Assembly: GCA_002269645.1 (NCBI GenBank) | Contig: NIVC01000433.1 | Coordinates: 136,873-200,872, forward strand | Length of the DNA stretch: 64,000 bases | Reading direction: 5' to 3' | Origin: Macrostomum lignano | Lineage: Eukaryota | Shown: piece after piece, positions 1 through 47,669 of the stretch | How the letters are laid out: each line of letters begins with the position of its first letter | Numbering within the stretch: position 1 is the first letter of the stretch | Made by a program: the position numbers and the translations under genes | Notes under the pieces: generated by a model | Databases searched by the model: none | Seen by the model: only the letters and a program-made list of their open reading frames with translations | What the model was told of the DNA's origin: nothing

Positions 1-1718
1 TTGGATAATTTTTCACCAAAATCACTAGCTGTCATCCTACCTTTGAACAATATTAGTCAGTTGTTTAGGTAAGTCAGACCTTCCTGAGATTCCTTCAGTC
101 TTCAACTGGGTTCATTTCCGTTTGGAAATCAGCCCTGATCTTAGCCAGCAAATTCTGAAATATTCGCTCAACTGAGCCAAAATGAATGAAAGAACAGTAT
201 TAATTTCCTTCTTTACCATAACTGGGAACCGATTTAGAAATAATTAATTAGACGTACAAGCAAAAGTACAATTGCATAACTTGTTTAAATATGAAATAAC
301 GTTTACGAAGCTTTCAAAGAATAATAGGTAATACGCCAAAAAAAGAACTTGTTCTCTGAATCTTAATTAGAGTACTAATGATATCAAGATGACGACTGAA
401 TGCTTGGGAGACCTGCTGAGGATGTTCAACAGTCGAGGCTTGATCAGCGAAACTCCAGAAATTTGCAACAGGGTGTCCATAGTCACCTGGCGCCACCTGT
501 TGAAGGTCCAGAAGCTCCGCCTAAGTGAAGGCCAGTTTGTTCGCCTGTGGCCCATCTAGTAGTATAGTATTCCCTACTATTCTTAATATTAGGCTATGCA
601 CGTCTACTGTATTCAGTAACGGACAATGACCAAGCCAGTCTGTTTTGACTTCCGACTGCGTTATTTTCTGACTGATTATAGTTTTCTATACATGTTCAGT
701 GTCGATTAATAGCAAAGCTGAGCATTAATCGTTTTTACTCGAGACAACAAACTTCTGAGCAACCCAGTGAAAGAATTTTTAGTTTTCATGCAGCCAATCA
801 AGAGATATTGACTTTTGAGTTTTGGCCTCCAGCCAATTTTACACGATTTTACACGAGTGTAGCGTCAATTTCTACTCTAGTTGTCCATAGCGTTGCTCCG
901 CTCCAGCGCATCAAAAAAATTGTCAGGGGGGGGGGATTTCTTCCTTTCTAACGGTTAAGGCGCTTGAACACGGAAGTCCAGAATGTGATTTAGTGCTAGA
1001 GCAACCCCCCAGCGCACAGGTGAGCATGCATTATTAAGATTATTATATAGGCTTGTTTAAACAAATCCTAGAGTTAGATAAAGCTATCTGCAGTGTAACA
1101 TATAGCCGGAGTTCGATAAAGGCTGATTTCAATACTCGTAACTGGTAAACACTCATGGCGTAACCCAATACCGAAAACCGAGCATGTAGTGGTTATTAAA
1201 CCAGCCGGGCAGAGGTCTCTCAGAGACCTTCAGGCTATGAGTTGACGGATGCTGGGGAAAAAGAGGCTGCACGAGATGATGGAGATTTAATAAGCCACCA
1301 ACATCTGATGCAGCGTGGCTAATGCGTTATCTGAGCTCATTTTTGGTCGCCTATAATTAGCTGCGAGCATACATTCCATCTCTGCAGGGTATTGAGATTA
1401 GCTTCATTAATAAACAGGATTAGTCGTTATGCAGCACGCAAGCAGGATAACCTCCTTGTGTGACCTCCATCAGATCCACTGCTATTCGTTTGGACAAGCA
1501 TTCACTCCCCCCGAATTGATCTTCTTCAGAGTCTCAGCTCAGTTATTGACTTACCTGTGTGACAAAGATTACTGCGTGTATCTGTGTGGAATCTTGAGAC
1601 TAAAGAAGATGGAGAGGGAGAGGGAGGGATAGCTAGTGGGAGAAGGAGAGAGGGAGGGCACCCCAATCTCAGATGCTGACGCGGTGAAAGGACTGATAAA
1701 AGTCAATTTAGTTAATGT

Positions 1719-1756
1719 TGCCGATATTTCGAGTTAGGCTACTCTTCATCAGGGCA
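1719..1756 (-). ncRNA. Minimal type I hammerhead ribozyme (Penelope-like element type)
   Basis: The minus strand reads UGCC-CUGAUGA-A-GAGU-AGCCUA-ACUC-GAAA-UAUC-GGCA. Stem I is UGCC/GGCA, the core is CUGAUGA and GAAA, stem II is GAGU/ACUC, stem III is a palindromic AUAU, and the cleavage triplet is AUC (C at 1723). Confidence 0.75.
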
Positions 1757-1949
1757 CTATGCGATTAAAATTTATTTGGCGTGAATTGCCGTCAATATTT
1801 AAAGGCCATAACGACAGGGACGATCGATAAAGGGAGATTGAGAGTGCCCAAGCGCATAAAACAGTACACATGGCCAGTACAATAGAGACTCCAAGAATGC
1901 AGAGTGGGTGGCTAGATCCTGTGCAAGCGAGCCGGCTAAACGACCTTAA

Positions 1950-3135
1950 AGAGAGGGAGGGAGAAGCAAGGAGAGCGAGAAGCTGATGGAGAAGGAGGGG
2001 GAGAAGGAGAGGGAAAGGGAGAGAGGGAGAGGTGAGAGGAGAGAGGGAGAGGAGAGAGGGAGAGGAGAGAGGTGAGAGGAGAGAGGGAGAGGAGAGAGGA
2101 GAGAGGGAGAGGAGAGAGGTGAGAGGAGAGAGGGAGAGGAGAGAGGGAGAGGAGAGAGGAGAGAGGAGAGAGGGAGAGGAGAGAGGAGAGAGGAGAGAGG
2201 TGAGAGGAGAGAGGAGAGAGGAGAGAGGTGAGAGGAGAGAGGTGAGAGGAGAGAGGGAGAGGTGAGAGGAGAGAGGTGAGAGGAGAGAGGTGAGAGGAGA
2301 GAGGAGAGAGGAGAGAGGTGAGAGGAGAGAGGTGAGAGGAGAGAGGTGAGAGGAGAGAGGTGAGAGGAGAGAGGAGAGAGGAGAGAGGTGAGAGGAGAGA
2401 GGTGAGAGGTGAGAGGAGAGAGGTGAGAGGAGAGAGGTGAGAGGAGAGAGGAGAGAGGAGAGAGGTGAGAGGAGAGAGGTGAGAGGTGAGAGGTGAGAGG
2501 AGAGAGGTGAGAGGAGAGAGGTGAGAGGAGAGAGGTGAGAGGAGAGAGGTGAGAGGAGAGAGGTGAGAGGAGAGAGGTGAGAGGTGAGAGGAGAGAGGTG
2601 AGAGGAGAGAGGTGAGAGGAGAGAGGTGAGAGGAGAGAGGTGAGAGGAGAGAGGTGAGAGGAGAGAGGTGAGAGGAGAGAGGTGAGAGGTGAGAGGTGAG
2701 AGGAGAGAGGTGAGAGGAGAGAGGTGAGAGGAGAGAGGTGAGAGGAGAGAGGTGAGAGGAGAGAGGTGAGAGGAGAGAGGGAGAGGTGAGAGGAGAGAGG
2801 GAGAGGTGAGAGGAGAGAGGGAGAGGTGAGAGGAGAGAGGGAGAGGTGAGAGGTGAGAGGAGAGAGGTGAGAGGAGAGAGGTGAGAGGAGAGAGGAGAGA
2901 GGAGAGAGGTGAGAGGAGAGAGGTGAGAGGTGAGAGGAGAGAGGTGAGAGGAGAGAGGTGAGAGGAGAGAGGAGAGAGGAGAGAGGTGAGAGGTGAGAGG
3001 AGAGAGGTGAGAGGAGAGAGGTGAGAGGAGAGAGGTGAGAGGAGAGAGGGAGAGGTGAGAGGAGAGAGGGAGAGGTGAGAGGAGAGAGGGAGAGGTGAGA
3101 GGAGAGAGGGAGAGGTGAGAGGAGAGAGGGAGAAT
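1950..3135. repeat. GA-rich microsatellite (GAGAG/GAGGT units)
   Basis: About 1.2 kb of gagaggtgagaggaga-type units. It explains the low-complexity ORFs 1936..3180 and 2032..2265. Confidence 0.97.
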
Positions 3136-5015
3136 CTGAAATGGCACAGCTGAAAAAGCGAGAGAGGCGAGACTGTTCAATCGGTCAGCACGATCTGTCA
3201 GTCCACCAGGTACATCGCGGCAGCATCAGGAACGGGTCGGATCTCCGCCGAGAGAAGATCGAGAGATGAGCCACTCAAGATTGCCTGGCAACAAGCACGT
3301 GCCCGAACTCGCGGCTCAGTACGAAAGATGTTTTAACTCGTCGCGATTGGCCGCGAGTAGCCAACAGCTCTGCACCAAACGATCGACAACAAAATTATGA
3401 AAAAACATGTTTTTCTGCTGGTTTGAATCTCATTTTTTAGCTTCGATCCTTCTATAGGCTGGGATTGACTCTCCCCTCGTACTTGAAGACGTGGCTAAGA
3501 TTTTCGGAGTGCCTTCCCAACAAGCTATTTTTGCCTTGGATGCAAAATTGACTGCCAAGCCCTGCCTCAGCCTGCTGGCTAGAAAAACTTTGATTAATTT
3601 CGCTTCATCTGTGTGCGTAGCCAACAGCAGAATAAAGTGCAACTCCGTATATCCAGGCCTTTCAAATCAATTTAGATGTTAGTTTTGAGGTGTGATAAGA
3701 ATTATATTTGCAGTCTCCCATACTAACTGGTTCGAGTCCGTTTGGCGACGTAAGAGAACGATCTTAGAGTGCGAGTATCTGATCAATTATTGCTCAATAC
3801 TGTACTCGGTAAATATTGTGTCTTCCTCTTCCACTCAAATAATCATGGTTAGTCTCTATGAGCGTATGTCGTGATTGATTTCAGGAAAAAAACGGCTTGA
3901 CCGATTTTATTGAGACTTGCACAGTTCGATCAGAATTTTTCTGTGACGGTACAATGGTACATGTGTCCTGGCTTAGAAATTGCTCAATGCTTAAAGGGAT
4001 TAGTATAGGAAAAACATGCTTTTTGTAAAGCAGAATCTTAGATTTTGAAAATGTATTGTGATCATTGTAGAGAGAAAAACTGACTGACTGAATGATGGCT
4101 TCAAGACAAAGATTCAAAACTATGATCAGGATTCTGGAAAATGAAAATTCTAGGAGATGAAGACTCCAGGAGACAGTTGTTCTTAGAAATTGAGATTAAA
4201 TAATAAATTAAAATTCTAAAAATAGGGATTCTGGTACTTAAATAATTACAAAATACAGATTCCAGAAATGAGAGGGCGTATATGTAGCAGTGATTCTACA
4301 AAGAAAAAATCTACACAGACCCTACATGCACCGATTTCTTAGAGTCACCTTGGGCATCAGAAAAACCGCTGGTTCCGAGAATCAACAAATAAAGAGGGTG
4401 GCGAAGCGTACAGGACTGTAAAAAACTCAAGTTTAATGCTAATAAATTCTCTGTAAACCTACCTCAAAATGGAACACATCCACAGAAGTGAATGCACATT
4501 GATGTCCGAAAGTTCTAATTCCAATTAATTCTAATTGCAAGTTCGGACAGATCGTGATTGAGAAATAATTAACAAATACGTCAAGCCCCCACTTCATCAG
4601 CGGTTAATAAGTTCCACGCTCAAACGATTCGTGCTAATTGAGTTCAAATGAGGACACCTCGTCCACAAAGTCGCATTTTCAAAGAAAAAAGGGGACTCCA
4701 AAGAGCCGGTTCTTAAGTTCTTCTCCGCCAGGATGTTATTAAAACAAAATCCTTATTTGGCAACTGTCGAGCTCAGTCGAACGTGCGTGCGTCTTATTAG
4801 AAAACTATCGACCAAACAACCCGCGACACACAGACAGTCAGGAATGTGTAGATAACTTAAATGTTAAATTTGAAAAGGCGCGAAGGTTAGTTTTGTTATA
4901 ACTGCGCGATGCCGTTCTCAAACTAAACCCAATCGACGCATCGAAAATGCAGTTGCTCATGTAGCAGAATTTCTCAAGTACATTTTGCTCTTTTTGTTTG
5001 AAAAATAGACAGCTC

Positions 5016-8000
5016 CTAAGAGCGCAGAGTGTCCAGAAGAGCTGAGCAGTTTGGTAGTTCGCCGTCAACTTTTTCCCGGTACGCTTGCAGGATCCCGGAT
5101 GCCAGCCGGAATGCAGGCAGTTCGCCAACCTGAGCTGCGCTGGAACAGTTGAACACCTCGTTGAGCTGCCACTGACGCCACAGATCCTCAGCAGATTCCG
5201 AGTTGGTGGCCGAATGTTCGTCAACAAACTTCCAGACTGCCTGCTTGTGTGCTGACACTGCCGCCTCGTTTGGTAGCGCAGAGTCTACCGACTCCCACGG
5301 CAGATGCTTCGGTGACATCAAGCTGCAGGCGATGTACACTAGACTCTCCAAATCAGCGTAGGGAGCTTCCAGTTTGACGTTCGGAGAAAATCGAACAGCA
5401 CCGTAGACCAGACTGCGCTCTCGTTCACCCCGATAGATCAGGCAGTTTCGGGTGAGCGGCTCTGCCGAAGCAAAGTCGGCCAAAAGCATCTCGTCGGATC
5501 CGAGCAGTTCGAAACTCGACGGTTGAAGGCAGCCGTGCGACCAGCCGGAGTTGTGCAGCTGGCCGACTTTGTTCAGCATGTCGCGGCACAGTCTCACTGC
5601 TGCTGGCGAGTCCAGGCACTTGACCGATGCTCGGTTGCCGTCTGTACAATGGTTGTTTGACAAGGATTGGGAATGGTAAAGCAGCGATGGAGTGTCAGAG
5701 ATGACAGCTACGGAGTGTCAAGGAAACACAGCGATGGAGTGTCAGGGAAACACAGCGATGGAGTGTCAGAGAAACACAGCGATGGAGTGTCAGGGATGAC
5801 AGCTACAGAGTGTCAGAGAAACACAGCGATGGAGTGTCAAGGAAACACAGCGATGGAGTGTCAAGGAAACACAGCGATGGAGTGTCAGGGAAACACAGCG
5901 ATGGAGTGTCAAGGAAACACAGCGATGGAGTGTCAGGGAAACACAGCAATGGAGTGTCAAGGAACCACAGCGATGGAACATAAGGGAAACACAGCGATGG
6001 AGTGTCAAGGAAACACAGCGATGGAGTGTCAAGGAAACACAGCGATGGAGTGTCAGAGAAACACAGCGATGGAGTGTCAGGGAAACACAGCGATGGAGTG
6101 TCAAGGAACCACAGCGATGGAGCATAAGGGAAACACAGCGATGGAGTGTCAGGGAAACACAGCGATGGAGTGTCAAGGAACCACAGCGATGGAGCATAAG
6201 GGAAACACAGCGATGGAGTGTCAAGGAAACACAGCGATGGAGTGTCAAGGAAACACAGCGATGGAGTGTCAGGGAAACACAGCGATGGAGTGTCAAGGAA
6301 ACACAGCGATGGAGTGTCAGGGATGACAGCTACGGAGTGTCAGAGAAACACAGCGATGGAGTGTCAAGGAAACACAGCGATGGAGTGTCAGAGAAACACA
6401 GCGATGGAGTGTCAGGGAAACACAGCAATGGAGTGTCAAGGAAACAACGATGGAGTGTCAAGGAAACACAGCGATGGAGTGTCAAGGAAACACAGCGATG
6501 GAGTGTCAGGGAAACACAGCGATGGAGTGTCAAGGAAACACAGCGATGGAGTGTCAAGGAAACACAGCGATGGAGTGTCAGGGAAACACAGCGATGGAGT
6601 GTCAGGGAAACACAGCGATGGAGTGTCAAGGAAACACAGCGATGGAGTGTCAGGGAAACACAGCGATTAAGTGTCAGGGAAACACAGCGATGGAGTGTCT
6701 GGGAAACACAGCGATGGAGTGTCAGAGAAACACAGCGATGGAGTGTCAGGGATGACAGCTACGGAGTGTCAGAGAAACACAGCGATGGAGTGTCAGAGAA
6801 ACACAGCGATGGAGTGTCAGAGAAACACAGCGATGGAGTGTCAGGGAAACACAGCAATGGAGTGTCAAGGAAACAACGATGGAGTGTCAAGGAAACACAG
6901 CGATGGAGTGTCAAGGAAACACAGCGATGGAGTGTCAGGGAAACACAGCGATGGAGTGTCAAGGAAACACAGCGATGGAGTGTCAGGGATGACAGCTACG
7001 GAGTGTCAGAGAAACACAGCGATGGAGTGTCAGGGAACCACAGCGATGGAGCATAAGGGAAACACAGCAATGGAGTGTCAAGGAACCACAGCGATGGAGC
7101 ATAAGGGAAACACAGCGATGGAGTGTCAAGGAAACACAGCGATGGAGTGTCAAGGAAACACAGCGATGGAGTGTCAAGGAAACACAGCGATGGAGTGTCA
7201 AGGAAACACAGCGATGGAACATAAGGGAAACACAGCTACGGAGTGTCAAGGAAACACAGCGATGGAGTGTCAGGGAAACACAGCAATGGAGTGTCAGGGA
7301 TAAGAGCTATGGACCATCAGGGAAACACTCGGTGGAGTGTCAGGAAAGGCAGCTTAGAGGGCACAGCCATAGCAAGCCAAACTCACTAATGACTCTCTGC
7401 AGCGAATCTTCAACATACTGACAGAGCAGAAAGTGCTGCCTATGCAACACCAATTGCCTATCATCATTCTTGTTCTCGGAAACCACTCGCCAACAGTCGT
7501 TGCCAAGGCAGCCAAATAGGTAGGGTCGGGGAAACGCCGAAGGATCTTGGACGGCTCTGAGAATGGCCCATTCGCGAAGCAGTTGCAGCGGCTCGGCCGG
7601 GTGAGCGCGGGCGTGCACTTTTAGCAGCACCTGTTGGCCGCAGCGCAGGGTTCTGGGGTCCAGGCACTGCAGCATCTGGTTGGGTTGGAACGAGGAAAGA
7701 AAAGATTGAGAAATCAACGTTGGAAGAAGTTGGAACTTGCATTGTTACTGTAAGTAGTGAGCTTGAACTGTAGCATTTTCGGTCTGAACAATGTCGGATG
7801 TCGAATGATGTTCCTAGTTATTCAGGTGTATTACTGTTAACAGCCCTGATTTTGTGCTCTAAGTACCTCTATTGGTGTGTTGTTGAAGCATCAAATGATG
7901 TGCTGTTGATGTATCTAATAGTGTGTTGTTGCTGTATCTAATAGTGTATTGTTGAAGCGTCTAATGGTGCGTTGCATCATATGATCTTATGTTTTTCGTG

Positions 8001-8989: not shown

Positions 8990-10046
8990 TCATAGCGTCT
9001 TCATCACAGTTTTGATCACAGTTTTGAGCACAAAGATCAGGCACTCAAAATTCTTCATCGAGTAGGATAAAACAAGTGCGCTACGAGATCCAGATGCATT
9101 AAGATAGTAATAGAGACCTTGTGTGATAATATTGGGATATTCTCTGTAGACTCCGCTGGCGTCAATGAATGAGCACTCGCTGTACCACCAGCCAGCGGAC
9201 CGTCCTTATGTGTGGAGCTGCCTCCGCTCCAGTTGTCATTGTCAGAGTCTGGAGTGCTGAACTGCCAGTTGTTCGGCGAGAAGTTCGAAGTAGTCATCTG
9301 TCCGACACTCGATCTAGTTGAGTCTAGCGGTCTCATCGAGCACCTGTACTTGTCGCTCGCTGGGCCAACAGAGAACGGAGCATTCTCAGCCCAGTACCAG
9401 GTGCCGCTCCAGTCGCTGAACTCCCAGCGGACTCTCCACACTCCAGTGGCGGTGAGCTGGTGGAGCTGCTCCAGTCCCATCCAGTAGTTGAGACTCTCGC
9501 CCTGACCGAATCCGCTCGCGTACTCCGCCCAGCTGCGATTGAAGTTGACGGAGCCGTCGAGTCTGTGCTGGAAGGTCGTCCAGCACTTCACCGGTTTTCT
9601 CATCTGCAATGGGCGATGCGGTGCTACGCTCGTACATTTTGTGCACGCATATTGATGCGGTGCTGCATTTCGTGCACGCATATTGATGCGGTGCTGCATT
9701 TCGTGCACGCATATTGATGCGATTCTGCAAAGTGCAGAAGCCGCAAAGCAAAGCTCATCTCACTCACCCACAGCTGAGGCAGGCTGAAGTCGCTGGCGTG
9801 CCGGCACTTCCAGCCGGCGTCCATCGCTCCCCAATCGCAGGCCAGCAGTGAGCAGGAGCCCGAGGATGCGTCGAAGCAGACGGCTTCCGCGTTACCAGCA
9901 GAAGTCACGCAGTGAATGTCGTTGACCGCCAGCTTCACCGCCAGCACCCAGTACTCGGCCAGGTGGCCTCGCTGGAGACTCCAGCAGGACTTCTCGGCCG
10001 TGGCAGCCGCTGCCATGACAGCGCAGATGATGAGCAGAGAATGCAT
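8990..10046 (-). CDS. Secreted fibrinogen-related domain (FReD) protein with a small Cys-containing N-terminal domain; 1-nt frameshift near 9204
   Basis: Signal peptide MHSLLIICAVMAAAATA. Exon 10046-9768, intron 9767-9604 (GTGAGT...TTGCAG, phase 0), exon 9603-8990. FReD motifs WTTFQHRLDGSVNFNRSWAEYASGFG, YWMGLEQLHQLT and FSTPDSDND are followed, in a shifted frame, by AGWWYSEC...SMK. Adding one base gives 297 aa. Confidence 0.8.
9641..9721. repeat. 31-bp tandem repeat (~2.6 copies) in the FReD intron
   Basis: gcacgcatattgatgcggtgctgcatttcgt starts at 9643, 9674 and 9705. Confidence 0.9.
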
Positions 10047-13923: not shown

Positions 13924-16900
13924 CTTTCTAGATGCTGAAGTGCAGCGGCTTATCGATGTAGTTGACAGGATTTATGGCTACAAATCAAAACCCATATTTG
14001 CATCTGTGCGGGCATTTCTCTTTACATACGGCGTGCAGGCGGCATTCCCTCATCATCTGCTGAAAAAGTACCTTCTGGTGAGAAAGGAGCAAGCGATTTT
14101 GGGAGCCACAGTTGGCGAAGGCACTCGCATTGAAAAAGTTGAAGTGAAGACAGTCGACAGCCCCGAGAATTTGATATGCTTCCAGCCGGTTCTGAGTGAC
14201 CAGCACAAACAGATGTTGGTCAATTCCAGTGACGTACTGGAGATCCACTTAATGACGGATCCATATTTCCCGGATTTTAATTATTCTGGCTACTCAATGC
14301 GGCCAATTTCTGACGAGCAGAACAAATCTTATTCCTTCCTGGACTGGCACCCAAGCAAGGTAATTAGCCAGTTAAAAGCTTCCGGTTTCTCCATGCTAAT
14401 CGTTCTTCCAGGCGCGTATTCGTCGCTAAAGTACGAAAATAATTTCCTCATGGCTCCCGGGAACGAGTACACAGCTGAGCATGCTAGAGAACTCCTGCAG
14501 TGAGGATCTTTACAACACACACTGCCACAGCGACCGATCGCCCGTGGTCTTCGCCAACTCACTGACTCGAAGGCAGGCAGAATTCACCTACAGCACCGCC
14601 GCCTACCTCTACGAGCAAATTAACAGCATTTTGATTGACAGGCTTGCAGCTGCCACGCCAATGTGCCGCACCCGTTGCCATGGCGATACCGTGACGCTCC
14701 CTGGCTTTAAAAAGTTTGCTGAAAGCGAAGATTTGCAAGAAATCGCCATGCAGAACGCGACGGACTATTGCAAAAGCAGGATACCCTGCTCATATCCGGA
14801 GTACAGCGCCAGCTTCTCATTCAGCAAGTGTCCCGGGCTCGGCAGCTCAACCGCAAAATTCTTTGCAAATTACGAAAATCGTCACTGGATACGTCACTGG
14901 ATTCACCAAAGTTAGCAAGGAGATGGCGCCTGCGCTTCACCAGCTGATTGCAGTTGCAAAGCAGATCGATAGCGGCATTCACTCCGCTCATCTAGAGGGC
15001 ATCTTTCGAAACTACGTAGCGGACTCCATGCTCAATGTCAAGATATTCATAGCGTCGATCAAGTCGCCTCAGATCATGCTCACCTGGGCCTACACGTTCA
15101 CAGATTTCCTGGCTGACACGGGCGGCCTGCTGGGCCTGTACATCGGCTGCAGTGTGCTCACCCTGTGCGAGCTGCTTTCAAGAGCTCCTCCACCACAGCG
15201 CGCTAGTCTTGCTCAAGTGAAAATCCGACGCTAGACGCTCAGGTGCAGCCGAGGAGCCTGAAGATGAAGCTGCTAAAATGAAGGTCATTACGGTCCCTGA
15301 AAGTAGCAGCCAAACTGCCTGATCTCAGAGACTTTGTATGGAAAAGATGTGATAAATACTTTCTAAGCACTGCAGGAAGTTCACACCCAAACTCATCTGT
15401 TTAACCAAAGTGTTTAAAAGCTTGCTCCTTTCAGCGAGATTTATTATGTCAGTAAGAACTAATCTTATAGAAATGCTGGTAATTAGTGTGAAAATTAAAC
15501 CTTTTTAATAAGTTTCTGCGAAAAAAAACTCTAGCTGTTAAATGCTTGATTTAGCATGTTTCGACGTAGTTTCCTGTCTATTATCGAGCATAGTTGTAGT
15601 ATTATCGAGAAAGCGGCTTTTACACCAGTATATGTCAGATAGTAGTATAACTATGTCACTCGAAATTAAAGTTATAAATAAGCACAGCGTCTACTCTTTT
15701 CTAGTAGTTTTTTGCGCAGTGTCACATAAATTTAATTTGGCAGCTAAAATTCTTCCACACTTGTACACGTACTTTTTGTTTCATGCTTACCCATGGAAAT
15801 TATTTAAGTTTTCTAAAATAGATTAGTGCAGCAATATCGTCACAGATTGTCAGCCCCTATAGAAGCTAACAGATAAGAACAATAGCACCGCAGCTCTCAT
15901 CTTGAGCGAGCCATTCTTCTTCTCAGACAAACTGCCCGTCCAAGCGCATAATCCAGCAGCGGTGGCAGATCTTGTGCGAGATGCAGGAACCTGATGGAGT
16001 CGCCCTCGGCAGCCAGCAACAGGTTTGGTGCTCTCGGCGTAGTGCTGCAGTTGGCGAACCAGATTTCCTTGCGACTTGGCCTGATCGTCCTCTGCGCATG
16101 CGTTTAGTACGCTCTCGGCTTTTGACTCGAAATCGCTGCGGGAATCGGGGGGGGGGATGGTAGTCAGCTTGTTGATTGTCGTCAAGGGGCTTTCTGCACT
16201 GTAGAAAAGCCACTAGGTGCTGGCGCCCCCTGCTTCTACGAGTCTACGGGCATTGCGGCGCTGCTCCTTCGTGTTACAAGGAATTACATGTATTGTACTT
16301 CTACCGGCGGTCTTGTGCCAAGTGCACTGGAGGACATGGCGCGACACAGAACGCTGGCTTCTGCAGCATTTCGGTTCGGTACGTCTGTATGAGAACTGTC
16401 AGTGTCCCGCACTTTCATACCGACTGAGGGGTACATTTATTGGTTTAATTATTCCAAGCTGCTGATCGAGTCAGTCCTGAGTCTTTTTACAACGTTCAAA
16501 GGTGACCCTGACCAACCATGCAGAATTGCTATGCATGCTGGACTGCAATATGCTGCCTTCTGCGTGTCACTACTGACTCGCTTCCTCTTCTAACATCACC
16601 TACGAGGAGCTGTATCGCCGGGCCCAGCTCCACCTAAAATCTGCCCACTGCGCGCGCACCCGTTACTGTCAATCTGTTTCTGGCTAAAGCCGAAATCTCT
16701 GATTTTCCTTGGATATTATTTTTACACAATTAGCGTTTTTAGAGCGTATTTTAGTGTTTTTGAACTTAATGTCCAACCGGCAGCCTATCATAAAAAACGG
16801 GTGCTGGTCTGTTAACTAAAACAATCTTAGAAGTAAGTCAAAACTTATTTCCTTTGAGAAGTTGAACATGCTTACATTTTTCTTTAAATAGCAGTACGCT

Positions 16901-18250: not shown

Positions 18251-24274
<6,024 letters not shown>

Positions 24275-24834
24275 ATTAATGTTTTATTCATACTCATGTT
24301 TTAAACTTATTTTTTTCATATTTTATTAGCTCCGCAGTCAAACTAATTTTGTTGATATTCATTTTGTTTTAAAATCATAAAAACAACATGAAACGCATTT
24401 AAGATAATTTGTTATTATCATATTTATACGTACGAATATAAGTTTCTAATTGCATTAGGTTAGCAATAATTGCCAAATTAATATTAATAATTTCATTATG
24501 CACATTTGTTCTGTCTAATTAACTGTTCCAGTCGCATTTCTGTCGGGCTCGAACTGAAGAACACAAAGGTGCAATTTCAAGTTTTACAAATTTAACTGTT
24601 TGCTTACTTATTTTCTATAAGTTTATAACTATATTAATGCAAGTAAGTGGTATTTGTTATAGTTAGTTCGCCTGCTGAGGTATAAATATACGTACCGGTG
24701 TACTTTTCAATCGTTTGTACTGTTGTAAATGCAGGCGGTGCTTGTAGTTTCCATTTTTGCTTTAAATTTAAAATTATACTAGGTTGTACTGCACAGTCAA
24801 CGAATCCTCATTGACTTTGAGGTTCTATGAAACT

Positions 24835-25680
24835 CCGAAATCCCCAAAGCTACAAAATCTCCAAAAAGCTAAGAAATCCCCAAAAAGCTACAAAAATCCC
24901 CAAAAAGCTAAGAAATCCCCAAAAAGCTACATAAATCCCCAAAAAGCTAAGAAATCCCCAAAAAGCTACAAAAATCCAAAAAGCTACAAAATCCCCAAAA
25001 AGCTACAAATTTCCCAAAAAGTTACGAATTCCCCAGAAAGCTACAAATTTCCCAAAAAGCTACAAAATCCCCAAAAAGCTACAAATTTCCCAAAAAGTTA
25101 CGAATTCCCCAAAAAGCTACAAATTTCCCAAAAAGCTACAAAATCCCCAGAGCTACAAAATCCCCAAAAAGCTACGAAATCCCCAAAGCTACAAATTTCC
25201 CAAAAAGCTACAAATTCCCCAAAAAGCTACAAATTCCCCAAAAAGCTACAAAATCCCCAAAAGCTACAAATTTCCCAAAAAAGCTACAAATTCCCCAAAA
25301 AGCTACAAATTCCCCAAAAAGCTACAAAATCCCCAAAAGCTACAAATTTCCCAAAAAGCTACAAATTTCCTAAAAAGCTACGAAATTCCCAAAAAGCTAC
25401 GAATTTCCAAAAAGCTACAAATTTCCTAAAAAGCTACAAAATTCCCAAAAAGCTACGAAATCCCCAAAAAGCTACAAATTTCCCAAAAAGCTACAAATTT
25501 CCCAAAAAGCTACAAAATCCCCAAAAAGCTACAAATTTCCCAAAAAAGCTACAAATTTCCTAAAAAGCTACGAAATCCCCAAAAAGCTACGAAATCCCCA
25601 AAAAGCTACGAAATCCCCAAAAAGCTACAAATCCCCAGAGCTGCAAATTCGCCAAATCGACGAAATCCCCCGAAAGTATA
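24835..25680. repeat. ~19-20-bp A/C-rich minisatellite between the convergent MELK and coiled-coil genes
   Basis: Unit ccccaaaaagctacaaatt. Explains ORF 24784..25563. Confidence 0.95.
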
Positions 25681-25869: not shown

Positions 25870-28800
25870 CTATTCGTCGTCGAACGCCTTCTGCACCAGC
25901 TCGCTGATGGTGGTCATGGTGAGGTGGCCGAAGGTCCTGGCCACTTTGCCGGAGTCGCAGTCGCCGCCAACCACGTGCACCAGACGGACTCGAAGCGTGA
26001 CTGGCACCATGGGGTCCTCCTCCAGGATGTTGCTGCGCATCTGGCTGGTCAGGTCGATCCTGCCGGTGAACACGTCCAGCCGCGTGGCTCCGCCCTTGCC
26101 TTGGCTTGTCAGTTTCACCTCGACGTAGACGGACTCGCCAAGTTTATCCTGAATATCCGAGAGGCTGCGCAGAATTTCGGTGTGCACCGGCTCGCAGGTC
26201 AGCTGGATCAGCGCCTTCTGCCTGCCGCTCGGATCGTTGGACGATTTGGCTTCGAACTGCAGGCTCTTGAGCGTGAATGCAACGTTGGCGTAGATTCTCA
26301 GACTGGGCACTGTGAACAGCAGTTCTCTTAGCGACTTTGCCGACGGGCCCATCGAGATGCGGCCGGTTAGTCCGAATCCGGCTCGCCGGCTGAGACTTCG
26401 GCAAGAGGAGTTTTCTAGCTGGATATCCGCGGGGTCAGCAGCTACTTCGCTGGCTTCATCGCTCATGGCATTCTGGTAGCAAGTCGCTTGAGTTAACTCG
26501 GCTATCCATGGCTCACTTATATAGCTACCCAATGTAATTGTCTTGACATCTGCATATACCAGCCACTGCTAATGCCACAGACAATTCTGCAAATCTGATC
26601 GACCAAGTTGTTGCAGCAGCATCCTTGTCCATCTTTATTGCCATAAAACAAAATATCGGTTTTTCTATGACGCCAAATTCCGCGTTTAAAAAGCGCCTAA
26701 TATGAGTTTTAAAATGGCGCCAAATTCTGCGTTTAAAAAGCGCCTAATATCAAGTTAAAAATAGCGCCAAATTCCGCGTTCCACTTTTGATAAAAGCGCC
26801 TAATATCAAGTTTAAAATGGTGGCAAATTTTGATTCCAAAAATCGCCAAATAATAAATCGAAAGTGGCGCCAAAATCCTTGTTTAAAAAGCGCCAAATAT
26901 TAAGTCTAAAAAGGCGCCGAATTCCGTGTTAAAAAAGCGCCTAATATCAAGTTTGAAATAGCGCTAAATTTTTAGTCCATAAAGCGCAAATAATATGTCG
27001 AAAGTGGCGCCGAATTCCTTGTTTTAAAAGCGCCAAATATTAAGTCTAAAATAGCGCCAAACTCCGTGTTAAAAAAGCGCGAATTCTGAGTTAAAAACGG
27101 CGCCAAATTCTGATCATATATTTTCAGTTGTTGGTCACATCAACTAGATACGCCATACCCAGTGACAAAACGCAAAGTGCAGAATTAAACAAAACGGCTT
27201 TCTCCTCATGAAATAAAAAAATGTTTTCTTGGAATACAAGAGTACGCGGCGCACTTTTACTATATACTAACACAATGCCAAGTCTGTAATGAACTATAAT
27301 ATTACTATAATACTAAATGTATTCCACTGGAAATAAATTATTGCGTTATAATTACCGACACTGAAAGTCAAGCGTCAAGATGGCCGGCAAGTAGTCAACA
27401 GAAATAGTAGGTTTTGTGGAGGCAGTTCCGTCATAAGACTGATTGAATGGAATACCCATCTTCAGGGAGAATTGCAGATTAAGCCGACTGAAGGTTCAGG
27501 GGTATTTCGAGTTTGATCCGACTGAAGGTTCTGGGCCAGGGGTATTTCGATTTTAGCCTGTTAAAGGTTCAGGGGTATTTTGAGTTTCTGAAGGCTACTG
27601 AAGTCTCAGGGGTAATCTTGGTAGTTAGGATACCCCTACAAAAGGCTCATCGATCATCATGAAGGAGAAGTGTCAGATCACACGCTGCCTATCTCGAAGT
27701 CTATTAGCAATTCTGCTAACCAGACTCTCTTGAGCTCCTCTGTCATCGGTGACGCCGCTGCCACCGCCACAGCCGCCTCTGTTGCCGCCGTCCTCATTTT
27801 GCTGCTGATTGAGTCGCCCGGCGATGTCGGCTAAAGCGGCGTCGAATTTCTTAGCATCGACCAGCTGATCGGCGGAAATGTCCAGTCGTTGTTTCAGCAC
27901 GTCTAGCAGAGCAGCTTGATTCTCTTGACGCTGCCGCGTGGTCTGGAAGTCTGCTTGGAGGGCTTCAATGCGAGACAGTGCCGCGGAGCAGACGTCCTTG
28001 ATGGCGATGCTGGTGGCCGAGTGCTGTTGTTGACCACGTGGTGAGTTCGACCTGCGGCTGATTAACGTGTTATATTTCAACTTTCACATATTTAGTGACT
28101 AACAGGTGATTCTATTAGGTGTCTAACAGGTGATACTATTAGGTGTCTAACAGGTGATTCTATTAGGTGTCTAACAGGTGATTCTATTAGGTGACTAACA
28201 GGTGATTCTATTAGGTGTCTAACAGGTGATTCTATTAGGTGACTAACAGGTGATTCTATTAGGTGTCTAACAGGTGATACTATTAGGTGTCTAACAGGTG
28301 ATTCTATTAGGTGTCTAACAGTTGATACTATTAGGTGACTAACAGGGGATTCTATTAGGTGTCTAACAGGTGATTCTATTAGGTGACTAACAGGTGATTC
28401 TATTAGGTGTCTAACAGGTGATACTATTAGGTGTCTAACAGGTGATACTATTAGGTGTCTAACAGGTGATTCTATTAGGTGTCTAACAGGTGATACTATT
28501 AGGTGACTAACAGGGGATTCTATTAGGTGTCTAACAGGTGATTCTATTAGGTGTCTAACAGGTAGGTGTCTAACAGGGGATTCCGAACAAGCTGACTGCA
28601 ACACAGCGGACACCCAAGACAGGTGCTCAGCGTACCTGCCAGCCGTATCAGCCGTCTGCCCTGGTGTCTTCAACAAGCCCAAGCTCTTGGCTAAGCGATC
28701 CACCGAATCTCCGTATTGCTGCTCCTGCTCCTGCTCTTGCTGTTGCTTTTGCTGTTGCTGCTGCTTTTGCTGTTGCTTCTGCTGTTGCTGGAGCCCAAGA

Positions 28801-46276: not shown

Positions 46277-46739
46277 CGGCAGCTTCCAGTGCCAAATTGT
46301 CTGCATGGGTGTGAGATAACTGCTCTAACTGATAGCTAGCTAATCTGTATAGTAATGTAGCAATAATTCAATTCATTTTCTCTGGCACTGTATATACATT
46401 CATAGTTGATATATTGATTTAGATATAACAGCTCCGCATGGCTACACAGGAGCACGCCAAACGATTTTGTGTGTGTGTGTGTGTGCAAGTTATAGAGCTA
46501 TAGAGGGCCAATGTAGCTTTCCTGTATCGTGACCGCTCTGGCTCGTGTAGGTTGCAGATATTAGGGAAACACAAACACCGCCTATCTGCAGTGCTGTGCA
46601 GCGCTGGGGGCAAGAGAACGGGCAAGTCCTGCCCAATGAAATCTGTCCCTCTCTCTCTCTCTCTGTGGGGGGGCGATGCAAATCGTGCCGAAAAGTGAGT
46701 GAAAATATGAAGGCCGGAAAAGAGATGAGACCTCTTGTC

Positions 46740-47450
46740 AGCTTGAGATAAGCGGTTGAGAGAACAGAGATAAGGAACCCGGTAGAGAGATAAGCAGTTG
46801 AGAGAAGAGAGATAAGGAACCCAGTAGAGAGGATAAGGAACCCAGTAGAGAGATAAGCAGTTGAGAGAAGAGAGATAAGGAATCAAGTAGAGAGGATAAG
46901 CAGTTGAGAGAAGAGAGATAAGGAACCCAGTAGAGAGATAAGCAGTTGAGAGAAGAGAGATAAGGAACCCAGTAGAGAGATAAGCGGTTGAGAGAAGAGA
47001 GATAAGGAACCCAGTAGAGAGATAAGCAGTTGAGAGAAGAGAGATAAGGAACCCAGTAGAGAGATAAGCGGTTGAGAGAAGAGAGATAAGGAACCCAGTA
47101 GAGAGATAAGCAGTTGAGAGAAGAGAGATAAGGAACCCAGTAGAGAGGATAAGGAACCCAGTAGAGAGATAAGCAGTTGAGAGAAGAGAGATAAGGAACC
47201 CAGTAGAGAGGATAAGGAACCCAGTAGAGAGATAAGCAGTTGAGAGAAGAGAGATAAGGAACCCAGTAGAGAGGATAAGGAACCCAGTAGAGAGATAAGC
47301 AGTTGAGAGAAGAGAGATAAGGAATCAAGTAGAGAGGATAAGGAACCCAGTAGAGAGATAAGCGGTTGAGAGAACAGAGATAAGGAACCCAGTAGAGAGA
47401 TAAGCGGTTGAGAGAACAGAGATAAGGAACCCAGAAGTAAGAGAAAAGAG
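46740..47450. repeat. ~42-bp purine-rich minisatellite with AGATAAG motifs, upstream of the ceramidase start
   Basis: Unit gagataaggaacccagtagagagataagcagttgagagaaga. Explains ORF 46738..47469. Confidence 0.95.
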
Positions 47451-47669
47451 AAGAATTGAAGGACATCAAGTCATTGAGTTATAAAAGCTGGCTAACATGC
47501 AGATACAAACAGTTTGCAAGTTCACACAACTAACTAAGTCAGGCATTCGAGCACTGGCAGATTAATTTGGTACAATACATTTCTACAATAATGATACAAG
47601 GAATAAAGCTGCATGGGGCCTGCATAAGAATAGAGGGCAGCAGGAAAAGAAAACACGAACACCACCGAA

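Follow-up and report, generated by a model that had tools for sequence, protein, structure and literature searches.

A minimal Penelope-type hammerhead motif in a probable 5'-truncated Penelope-like element fragment of Macrostomum lignano

In the 64-kb stretch of Macrostomum lignano DNA that we analyzed (the window), we found that the minus strand at 1719-1756 carries a motif whose identity as a ribozyme is well supported by its sequence; on this reading it is a genuine minimal hammerhead of the kind known from Penelope-like elements (PLEs), but ordinary of its kind. The best explanation for its presence here, and one that we consider very probable, is that the window contains a dead-on-arrival, 5'-truncated PLE fragment that inserted into a CT-rich microsatellite.

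Read from 1756 to 1719, the 38 bases of the motif are UGCC-CUGAUGA-A-GAGU-AGCCUA-ACUC-GAAA-UAU-C/GGCA, with the predicted cleavage site at the slash, and they contain the full hammerhead core (C3-A9, G12-A14, A15.1-U16.1 and C17; Table 1). The original prediction had stated that every catalytic core nucleotide is present on the minus strand, that stem I (UGCC/GGCA) and stem II (GAGU/ACUC) pair perfectly and that stem III is an AUAU palindrome, and our reading of the sequence agrees on each of these points. The new 5' end that it placed at 1722 is also the one expected if C17 is at 1723. It missed the unpaired A1745 between the core and stem II.

Table 1. Features in and around the hammerhead motif, in window positions
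Feature	Position	Strand	Basis or remark
Minimal type I hammerhead ribozyme motif (PLE type), putative	1719..1756	minus	sequence, descriptor, covariance model R1
Stem I, 4 Watson-Crick bp	UGCC 1756-1753 / GGCA 1722-1719	minus	
Hammerhead core C3-A9, CUGAUGA	1752-1746	minus	
Unpaired A between A9 and G10.1	1745	minus	
Stem II, 4 Watson-Crick bp	GAGU 1744-1741 / ACUC 1734-1731	minus	
Loop 2, AGCCUA	1740-1735	minus	
GAAA box	1730-1727	minus	G12-A14 = 1730-1728; A15.1 = 1727
Palindrome A15.1-U15.2-A16.2-U16.1 = AUAU	1727-1724	minus	helix III remnant
C17	1723	minus	predicted cleavage between C1723 and G1722
Probable 5'-truncated PLE copy, last ~300 nt of 3'UTR/pseudo-LTR	1653..1950	minus	TTTAAGGTCG to GATTGGGGTGCCCTCC
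Degenerate CT-rich tail after element 3' end	1602..1652	minus	clean (CT)n in sister copies
(GGAGAGA)n minisatellite, 167 copies, 87% match	1988..3133	.	Tandem Repeats Finder

We wrote our own descriptor of a minimal hammerhead, which asks for CUGANGA, a bulge that may be absent, four or more pairs in stem II, GAAA, a palindromic remnant of helix III, UH and four pairs in stem I. Searched on both strands, the window has a single match, 1719-1756, and we found 0 matches in 300 dinucleotide-preserving shuffles of the window. A covariance-model search, which had been proposed along with the original prediction as a check, likewise finds the motif: our model R1, built from 11 family variants, has one match in the window, at 53.2 bits (E 1e-13). 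In contrast to these searches, Rfam gave 0 matches in the whole window at the gathering score, and at E ≤ 10 its matches in the 501-base stretch 1500-2000 were without any hammerhead family. When run over the 764-Mb genome, the Rfam model RF00163 (Hammerhead_1) detected none of the family copies described below. Its three genome matches (20.6 bits; L001-L003) have no GAAA box and look like chance. The motif also has no intramolecular helix III, as the A15.1-U16.1 pair would enclose two nucleotides (UA) only and form no hairpin. Both the missing Rfam match and the missing intramolecular helix III are expected of the PLE minimal variant class. Four hallmarks have been described for PLE minimal hammerheads: consensus families that covary, an unpaired nucleotide between A9 and G10.1, a G10.1-C11.1 pair and a palindrome at 15.2-16.2 (PMC4209133). 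The window motif has all four (a covarying family, A1745, G1744-C1731 and the U1726-A1725 palindrome), which upholds its original classification as a minimal Penelope-type, type I hammerhead with a palindromic stem III.

The genome that we searched is a 764-Mb eukaryotic assembly of 5,269 contigs, in which the window is C433:136873-200872. A blast of 1600-1950 against this genome, which had also been suggested beforehand as a way to look for related copies, found them: one copy is 100% identical and at least 40 dispersed relatives are 72-77% identical. When we counted cores genome-wide with an IUPAC pattern specific to the family, CTGANGAAN{8,26}GAAATATCGGC, there were 244 occurrences as compared to 0 for the reversed control. 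The early impression of only one copy thus holds within the window, where R1 has its single match, but not in the genome, where there are at least 244 intact cores. In the alignment of copies, the repeat spans TTTAAGGTCG (window 1950) to ...GCCCTCC (window 1653); past this end nearly every aligned copy turns into (CT)n, and most sister copies reach further upstream than the window copy does. These counts bear on the simplest alternative, that the motif resembles the hammerhead consensus by chance, to which we assign next to no probability. A motif this short is, by our estimate, expected a few times in a 764-Mb genome, and the lack of an Rfam hammerhead match would suit a chance origin; however, chance is rejected by the empty window shuffles, by the genome count against its reversed control and by the covariation of the stems around an invariant core, and it also fails to fit the placement of family hammerheads in PLE ends.

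To describe how the repeat is conserved, we calculated the majority fraction of each column in the alignment of units. The most conserved columns are the hammerhead core boxes: the fraction reaches 1.00 in GAAAUAUC and 0.94 in CUGANGA together with the additional A. Stem II and its loop are the least conserved part of the unit (0.72 as compared to 0.88-0.90 in the flanks), yet stem II is still paired, as GAGU/ACUC in the window and as GAAAUU/AAUUUC, GAAUAU/AUAUUC, GAAUACU/AGUAUUC and GAAUU/AAUUC in other copies; the 244 cores of the genome likewise contain a wide variety of stem II sequences whose two strands pair. Over the fetched loci, R1 gave 60 matches, 33 of them distinct. Standard pairs occupy 92.9% of the pair cells in the 33 distinct variants; when the partner column is slid by 1-3 columns as a control, 12-45% of cells are paired. 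Double (compensatory) changes are present in four of the nine pairs, in stems I and II. Covariation was measured in an alignment (A2) that was fitted to the R1 model and whose sequences have a common ancestry; the score is 0.293 as compared to 0.113 ± 0.018 after shuffling, and 0 of 500 shuffles reach 0.293; the slid-partner control and an independent MAFFT alignment agree with this result. The G10.1-C11.1 pair is G-C in 26 and G-U in 2 of the 33 distinct variants, an A is present at the position equivalent to 1745 in the sampled variants with an intact core, and C3, G5, A6, G8, A9, G12, A13, A14 and C17 are near-invariant across the 33. This pattern, in which the core is fixed while the stems covary, fits a structured catalytic RNA.

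We found full-length parent elements elsewhere in the genome, at L032 (contig C20) and L033 (contig C224), where two same-strand hammerheads ~5 kb apart flank two open reading frames, ORF1 and ORF2. In both loci the order is the 3' part of a 5'-truncated ORF2, a 3'UTR with a hammerhead, a short (CT)n, ORF1 (~750 aa), ORF2 (~764 aa), a second 3'UTR with a hammerhead and a long (CT)n. This arrangement is the partial-tandem, pseudo-LTR layout that has been described for PLEs (PMC4209133, PMC8557442), in which the minimal hammerheads are located in the pseudo-LTRs (PMC4209133). Hammerheads in the repeated ends of an element with RT and GIY-YIG are thus found in L032 and L033, and not in the window. 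The suspicion that the window motif is a PLE remnant is supported in that the same repeat is the 3' end of these full-length elements, while the accompanying statement that no parent element is visible is correct for the window and incorrect for the genome.

ORF2 contains a DKG motif (ADKG), RT motifs including YIDD, and a CX5CxxC linker (CNPARLCKCC). Its C-terminus has a GIY...YVGET...R...H...H core (AVY..C..C..YVGET..R..H..H) with two embedded cysteines (CCHH). All of these motif residues are invariant in an alignment of 18 proteins (A3; 17 homologues at 35-40% identity). The Pfam match of ORF2 to RVT_1 is below the cut-off (18-20 bits) and that to GIY-YIG is weak and sub-threshold (E 0.045); the homologues are annotated PF00078 and many carry PF01541. 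Over 46% of its length, ORF2 is 100% identical to a UniRef protein from Macrostomum lignano. An RT with a C-terminal GIY-YIG that has CCHH defines canonical EN+ PLEs (PMC8557442), and the Neptune and Nematis clades are reported to have a CX2-5CxxC linker (Arkhipova 2006; Craig et al. 2021, PMC8557442). By its motifs, the parent ORF2 is PLE-like, with an RT followed by a C-terminal GIY-YIG with CCHH. In a PDB sequence search, neither the ORF2 family profile nor the ORF1 C-terminus gave a meaningful match.

The upstream ORF1 (~740-750 aa; L032:4800-7061 and L033:4869-7085, both on the minus strand) has a long Ala/Ser-rich repeat and a C-terminal stretch that includes …VIVWAGNNDL…. Pfam found nothing on ORF1 at E ≤ 0.01, and the C-terminal 159 aa have a sub-threshold match to GDSL_2 (GDSL-like lipase, E 0.0014). 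ORFs for a GDSL esterase have been described from several retroelements, among them the Terminons of rotifers (PMC5408684). The parent resembles canonical EN+ PLEs in its RT, its GIY-YIG with CCHH, its CX5CxxC linker and its DKG; the family further resembles them in having a pseudo-LTR, a 3'-end hammerhead, 5'-truncated copies and a microsatellite association. Published descriptions give canonical EN+ PLEs one ORF, whereas in the parent ORF1 (~750 aa) is a distinct frame that precedes ORF2; the microsatellite of the family is (CT)n, in contrast to the (TA)n or (CA)n reported for other PLE clades. In a divergent sister lineage (L029:1608-1659 and L030:1687-1738), in which ORF2 is ~42% identical, the hammerhead core is disrupted: GUGACCGGA replaces CUGANGAAG and the GAAAUAUCGGCA half is intact. 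The motif in these two loci is either a decayed or a variant ribozyme.

To place the window copy in relation to the full-length elements, we compared the window with the element body by blastn. Homology is present at 1951..1612 only, and this stretch matches both hammerhead-bearing ends of L032. The fragment (1950..1653) is 298 nt long, starts ~215 nt past the stop codon of ORF2 in the reference copy and has its hammerhead ~70 nt from its 3' end; on the upstream side of the hammerhead, ~190 nt are homologous to the parent 3'UTR, in the same order as in the RT-encoding copies. A tblastn of the parent ORF1 and ORF2 against the 64-kb window found no PLE coding sequence, in agreement with the earlier remark that no RT or GIY-YIG ORF lies nearby, and a search for a partner hammerhead in cis over ~100 kb (40 kb to the left and 62 kb to the opposite side) gave none. 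The 5' starts of sister copies vary: they lie around ORF2 residues 337, 393, 445, 521, 529, 645, 671, 684 and 717, at positions inside the 3'UTR, or just a few bases ahead of the hammerhead, while the 3' end is common to all. Varied 5' starts with a common 3' end are the signature of 5' truncation in target-primed reverse transcription. Since there is no PLE ORF in the window and no partner within ~100 kb, the window copy is most likely an inert fossil, and its intact ribozyme most likely reflects selection on the master element before insertion, not local function.

In most copies the C+T fraction downstream of the element is 0.8-1.0; the 3' junctions are CT-rich in nearly all family copies and the 5' junctions in about half of them. 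These junctions suggest insertion into (CT)n-type microsatellites; PLEs of other clades are known to favor microsatellites made of different repeats (PMC8557442). In the window, the (GGAGAGA)n array adjoins the truncated 5' end of the fragment and is (TCTCTCC)n on the hammerhead strand, and similar CT/GA-rich arrays are found beside most family copies, on one or both sides. The window array is probably either the microsatellite target of the element or the tail of an earlier insertion.

Other long minisatellites are present in the window at 5661-7303, 24772-25563, 28092-28500 and 46419-47478. The minisatellites give rise to spurious repeat-encoded frames (for example GNTAMECQ, KSPKSYKNPQKA, SPVRHLIE and LSTGFLIS repeats) in several reading frames. 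The window also contains pieces of host genes, which are split and of animal type: a fibrinogen C-terminal domain at 9058-9759 on the minus strand (E 5e-26), the C-terminal part of an amiloride-sensitive sodium channel at 14695-15231 on the plus strand (E 5e-12), and a protein kinase domain in two exons at 19174-20364 on the plus strand (Pkinase E 8e-24 and 1e-20). Low-complexity sequence fills the intron that splits the kinase domain.

The 100% identical copy found by blast is on contig C177, where the flanking sequence to either side follows that of the window in order, at 98-99.7% identity. Because the flanks are collinear, this copy represents a duplicated or allelic locus and not a second transposition. 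The duplicated region pairs window 1-5409 with C177:286000-291594 (L045) and covers the flanks, the PLE fragment (100%) and the minisatellite. Either a haplotig or a recent duplication, segmental or of the whole genome, would account for it. One could ask whether a locus that is kept in two duplicated regions, with a fully intact ribozyme in a copy diverged from all sampled relatives, has been domesticated by the host to process a host transcript. We find this hard to credit, as the motif is unable to fold alone and a search of ~100 kb gave no partner for it, microsatellite DNA surrounds it, and the duplicated locus is uniformly similar with no sign of special constraint on the motif.

Besides the duplicated locus, we found no relative of the window copy that is more than 77% identical, and hence no master element of its own. 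Relatives with the window type of stem II (L042-L044) are 82-86% identical over ~100-120 nt, and no ORF2 was found in them. Two of these window-like hammerhead copies (L043:1079-1125 and L044:1034-1080, minus strand) have G10.1 changed to A; their family homology breaks off ~5 nt past the cleavage site, where CT-rich repeat follows at once, as though the cut of the ribozyme lay close to the end of the element. At four other loci, short units of (CT)n, a hammerhead of the family and a ~110-nt tail are repeated head to tail. In L037:1370-1732 their period is 176 nt, and in L035:1072-1560, L036:1396-1869 and L038:1178-1498 the hammerheads are 134-294 nt apart. These units are extremely 5'-truncated copies in a retrozyme layout and could yield small circular RNAs.

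The short tandems of hammerhead, tail and (CT)n raise a further alternative, that the window copy is an independent, short, non-autonomous hammerhead-bearing (retrozyme-like) unit, as the original prediction had offered beside a PLE remnant. A 2026 preprint makes the case that the pseudo-LTRs of PLEs gave rise to the retrozymes of animals (10.64898/2026.07.22.740005), and the window-type stem II is found only in short copies without ORF2, which would both suit such a unit. However, retrozymes are tandem repeats of ~150-450 bp that each contain a type I hammerhead, whereas the window copy is single. Its ~190 nt of upstream homology is collinear with the 3'UTR of RT-encoding copies, and the sisters form a continuum of 5' truncation points, which is expected from abortive reverse transcription; for these two reasons a plain 5'-truncated copy is favored, and we consider an independent unit quite unlikely.

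The way in which the hammerhead would act can be outlined from the full-length members of the family, where the ~300-nt segment is the 3'UTR. Since PLEs insert as partial tandems, the segment is repeated ahead of the ORFs as the pseudo-LTR, so that each transcript contains two hammerheads ~5 kb apart. A lone motif is unable to close helix III because of the two-nucleotide loop described above; two motifs, however, could pair AUAU with AUAU to form a 4-bp intermolecular helix III in a "double hammerhead". The enzyme half of copy one (the 5' strand of stem I, CUGANGA, stem II and GAAA) would then act on U16.1-C17-stem I 3' of the other copy and cut after C17, and the outcome would be a unit-length RNA trimmed from the tandem transcript. 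We infer both self-cleavage and this dimer mechanism from the motif, and it is a reasonable inference that the window motif would need a partner in trans.

We computed folding energies for the monomer and for the dimer. The nested double hammerhead has a favorable computed energy of –13.4 kcal/mol for the window sequence and of –8.6 to –18.4 kcal/mol for family variants; by cofolding, it is not the nearest-neighbor minimum-free-energy dimer. In the monomer, the minimum-energy folds of three family variants have stems I and II as drawn. For the window monomer, the minimum (–9.7 kcal/mol) contains four additional pairs that form a helix through the core; the plain hammerhead is at –8.9 kcal/mol. 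Helix III of the double hammerhead is all A/U, 4 bp long and weak. As the double hammerhead is allowed but is not the minimum-energy structure, folding energies do not decide the mechanism. In previous experiments, PLE minimal hammerheads cleaved weakly, and only when joined as dimers or trimers or when given an engineered helix III (PMC4209133).

An alternative to cleavage is that the PLE motif is conserved as an RNA structure with a different role, for example as a 3'UTR recognition element for the RT/EN or as a "parasitic" hammerhead that the element merely tolerates. We regard this as unlikely, although it is the alternative to which we give the most weight. Metazoan PLE minimal hammerheads have low activity in vitro (PMC4209133), PLE clades without hammerheads proliferate well (PMC8557442), and in an Anolis PLE the hammerhead is active while catalytic mutants left insertion in vitro unaffected and RNA-seq gave no ends at the cleavage site (PMC11167929). 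In our data, all DNA copies run ~70 nt plus (CT)n past the cleavage site, so the copied templates were either uncleaved there or cleaved and then religated. In contrast, nucleotides that are needed only for catalysis are near-invariant across diverged subfamilies, which is hard to explain by a simple protein-binding hairpin.

We compared the window motif with the metazoan PLE minimal hammerheads of Cervera & De la Pena 2014, which include those of the Cercyon PLEs of the flatworm Schistosoma mansoni (PMC4209133). Like these, it is type I, has a 4-bp helix I and lacks a real helix III, and in both cases most copies are solitary motifs in truncated elements. For S. mansoni, however, a helix II of 7-8 bp is reported (PMC4209133), whereas it is 4 bp in the window and 4-7 bp in the family. 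Dimeric hammerheads are also known from newt and salamander satellite 2 transcripts and from avocado sunblotch viroid (Forster et al. 1988, as summarized in PMC4209133 and PMC7229834). According to those summaries, they share with the window motif a helix III that is too short in the monomer and a palindromic helix III/loop 3 through which two motifs would pair and cleave each other; they are summarized as having a 1-2-bp helix III with a loop, canonical loop-loop tertiary contacts and short tandem repeats, whereas helix III here is AUAU and the nearest partner is ~5 kb away in the full element. Metazoan non-LTR retrozymes have type I hammerheads and are related to PLE pseudo-LTRs (PMC7229834; 10.64898/2026.07.22.740005). 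The likeness is that short tandem hammerhead units of the same PLE family exist elsewhere in this genome (L035-L038); the difference is that retrozyme hammerheads are canonical type I with loop-loop contacts, whereas the window hammerhead is of the minimal PLE type. Our literature search found no paper on PLEs or hammerheads in Macrostomum.

A far-reaching reading, which we offer as a long shot, is that the solitary cores (at least 244, all with the AUAU palindrome) are not inert: within host transcripts they could be cleaved after pairing in trans with plentiful PLE or retrozyme-like RNAs that have this motif as well, and there would be a transposon-driven, genome-wide layer of RNA processing. 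More modestly, the parent may represent a PLE lineage of free-living flatworms, as yet undescribed, that has two ORFs, is associated with (CT)n and spawns retrozyme-like tandems. Taken alone, the finding in the window matters little, as thousands of minimal hammerheads are known from truncated PLEs of animals, another flatworm included. Its value lies mostly in annotation: a covariance-supported hammerhead family with full-length two-ORF parents is present in a flatworm that is a laboratory model, and since RF00163 is blind to at least 244 PLE-type hammerheads here, standard annotation would miss the whole class. The Macrostomum lignano family could make the in vivo role of PLE hammerheads, which has long been unsettled, experimentally approachable.
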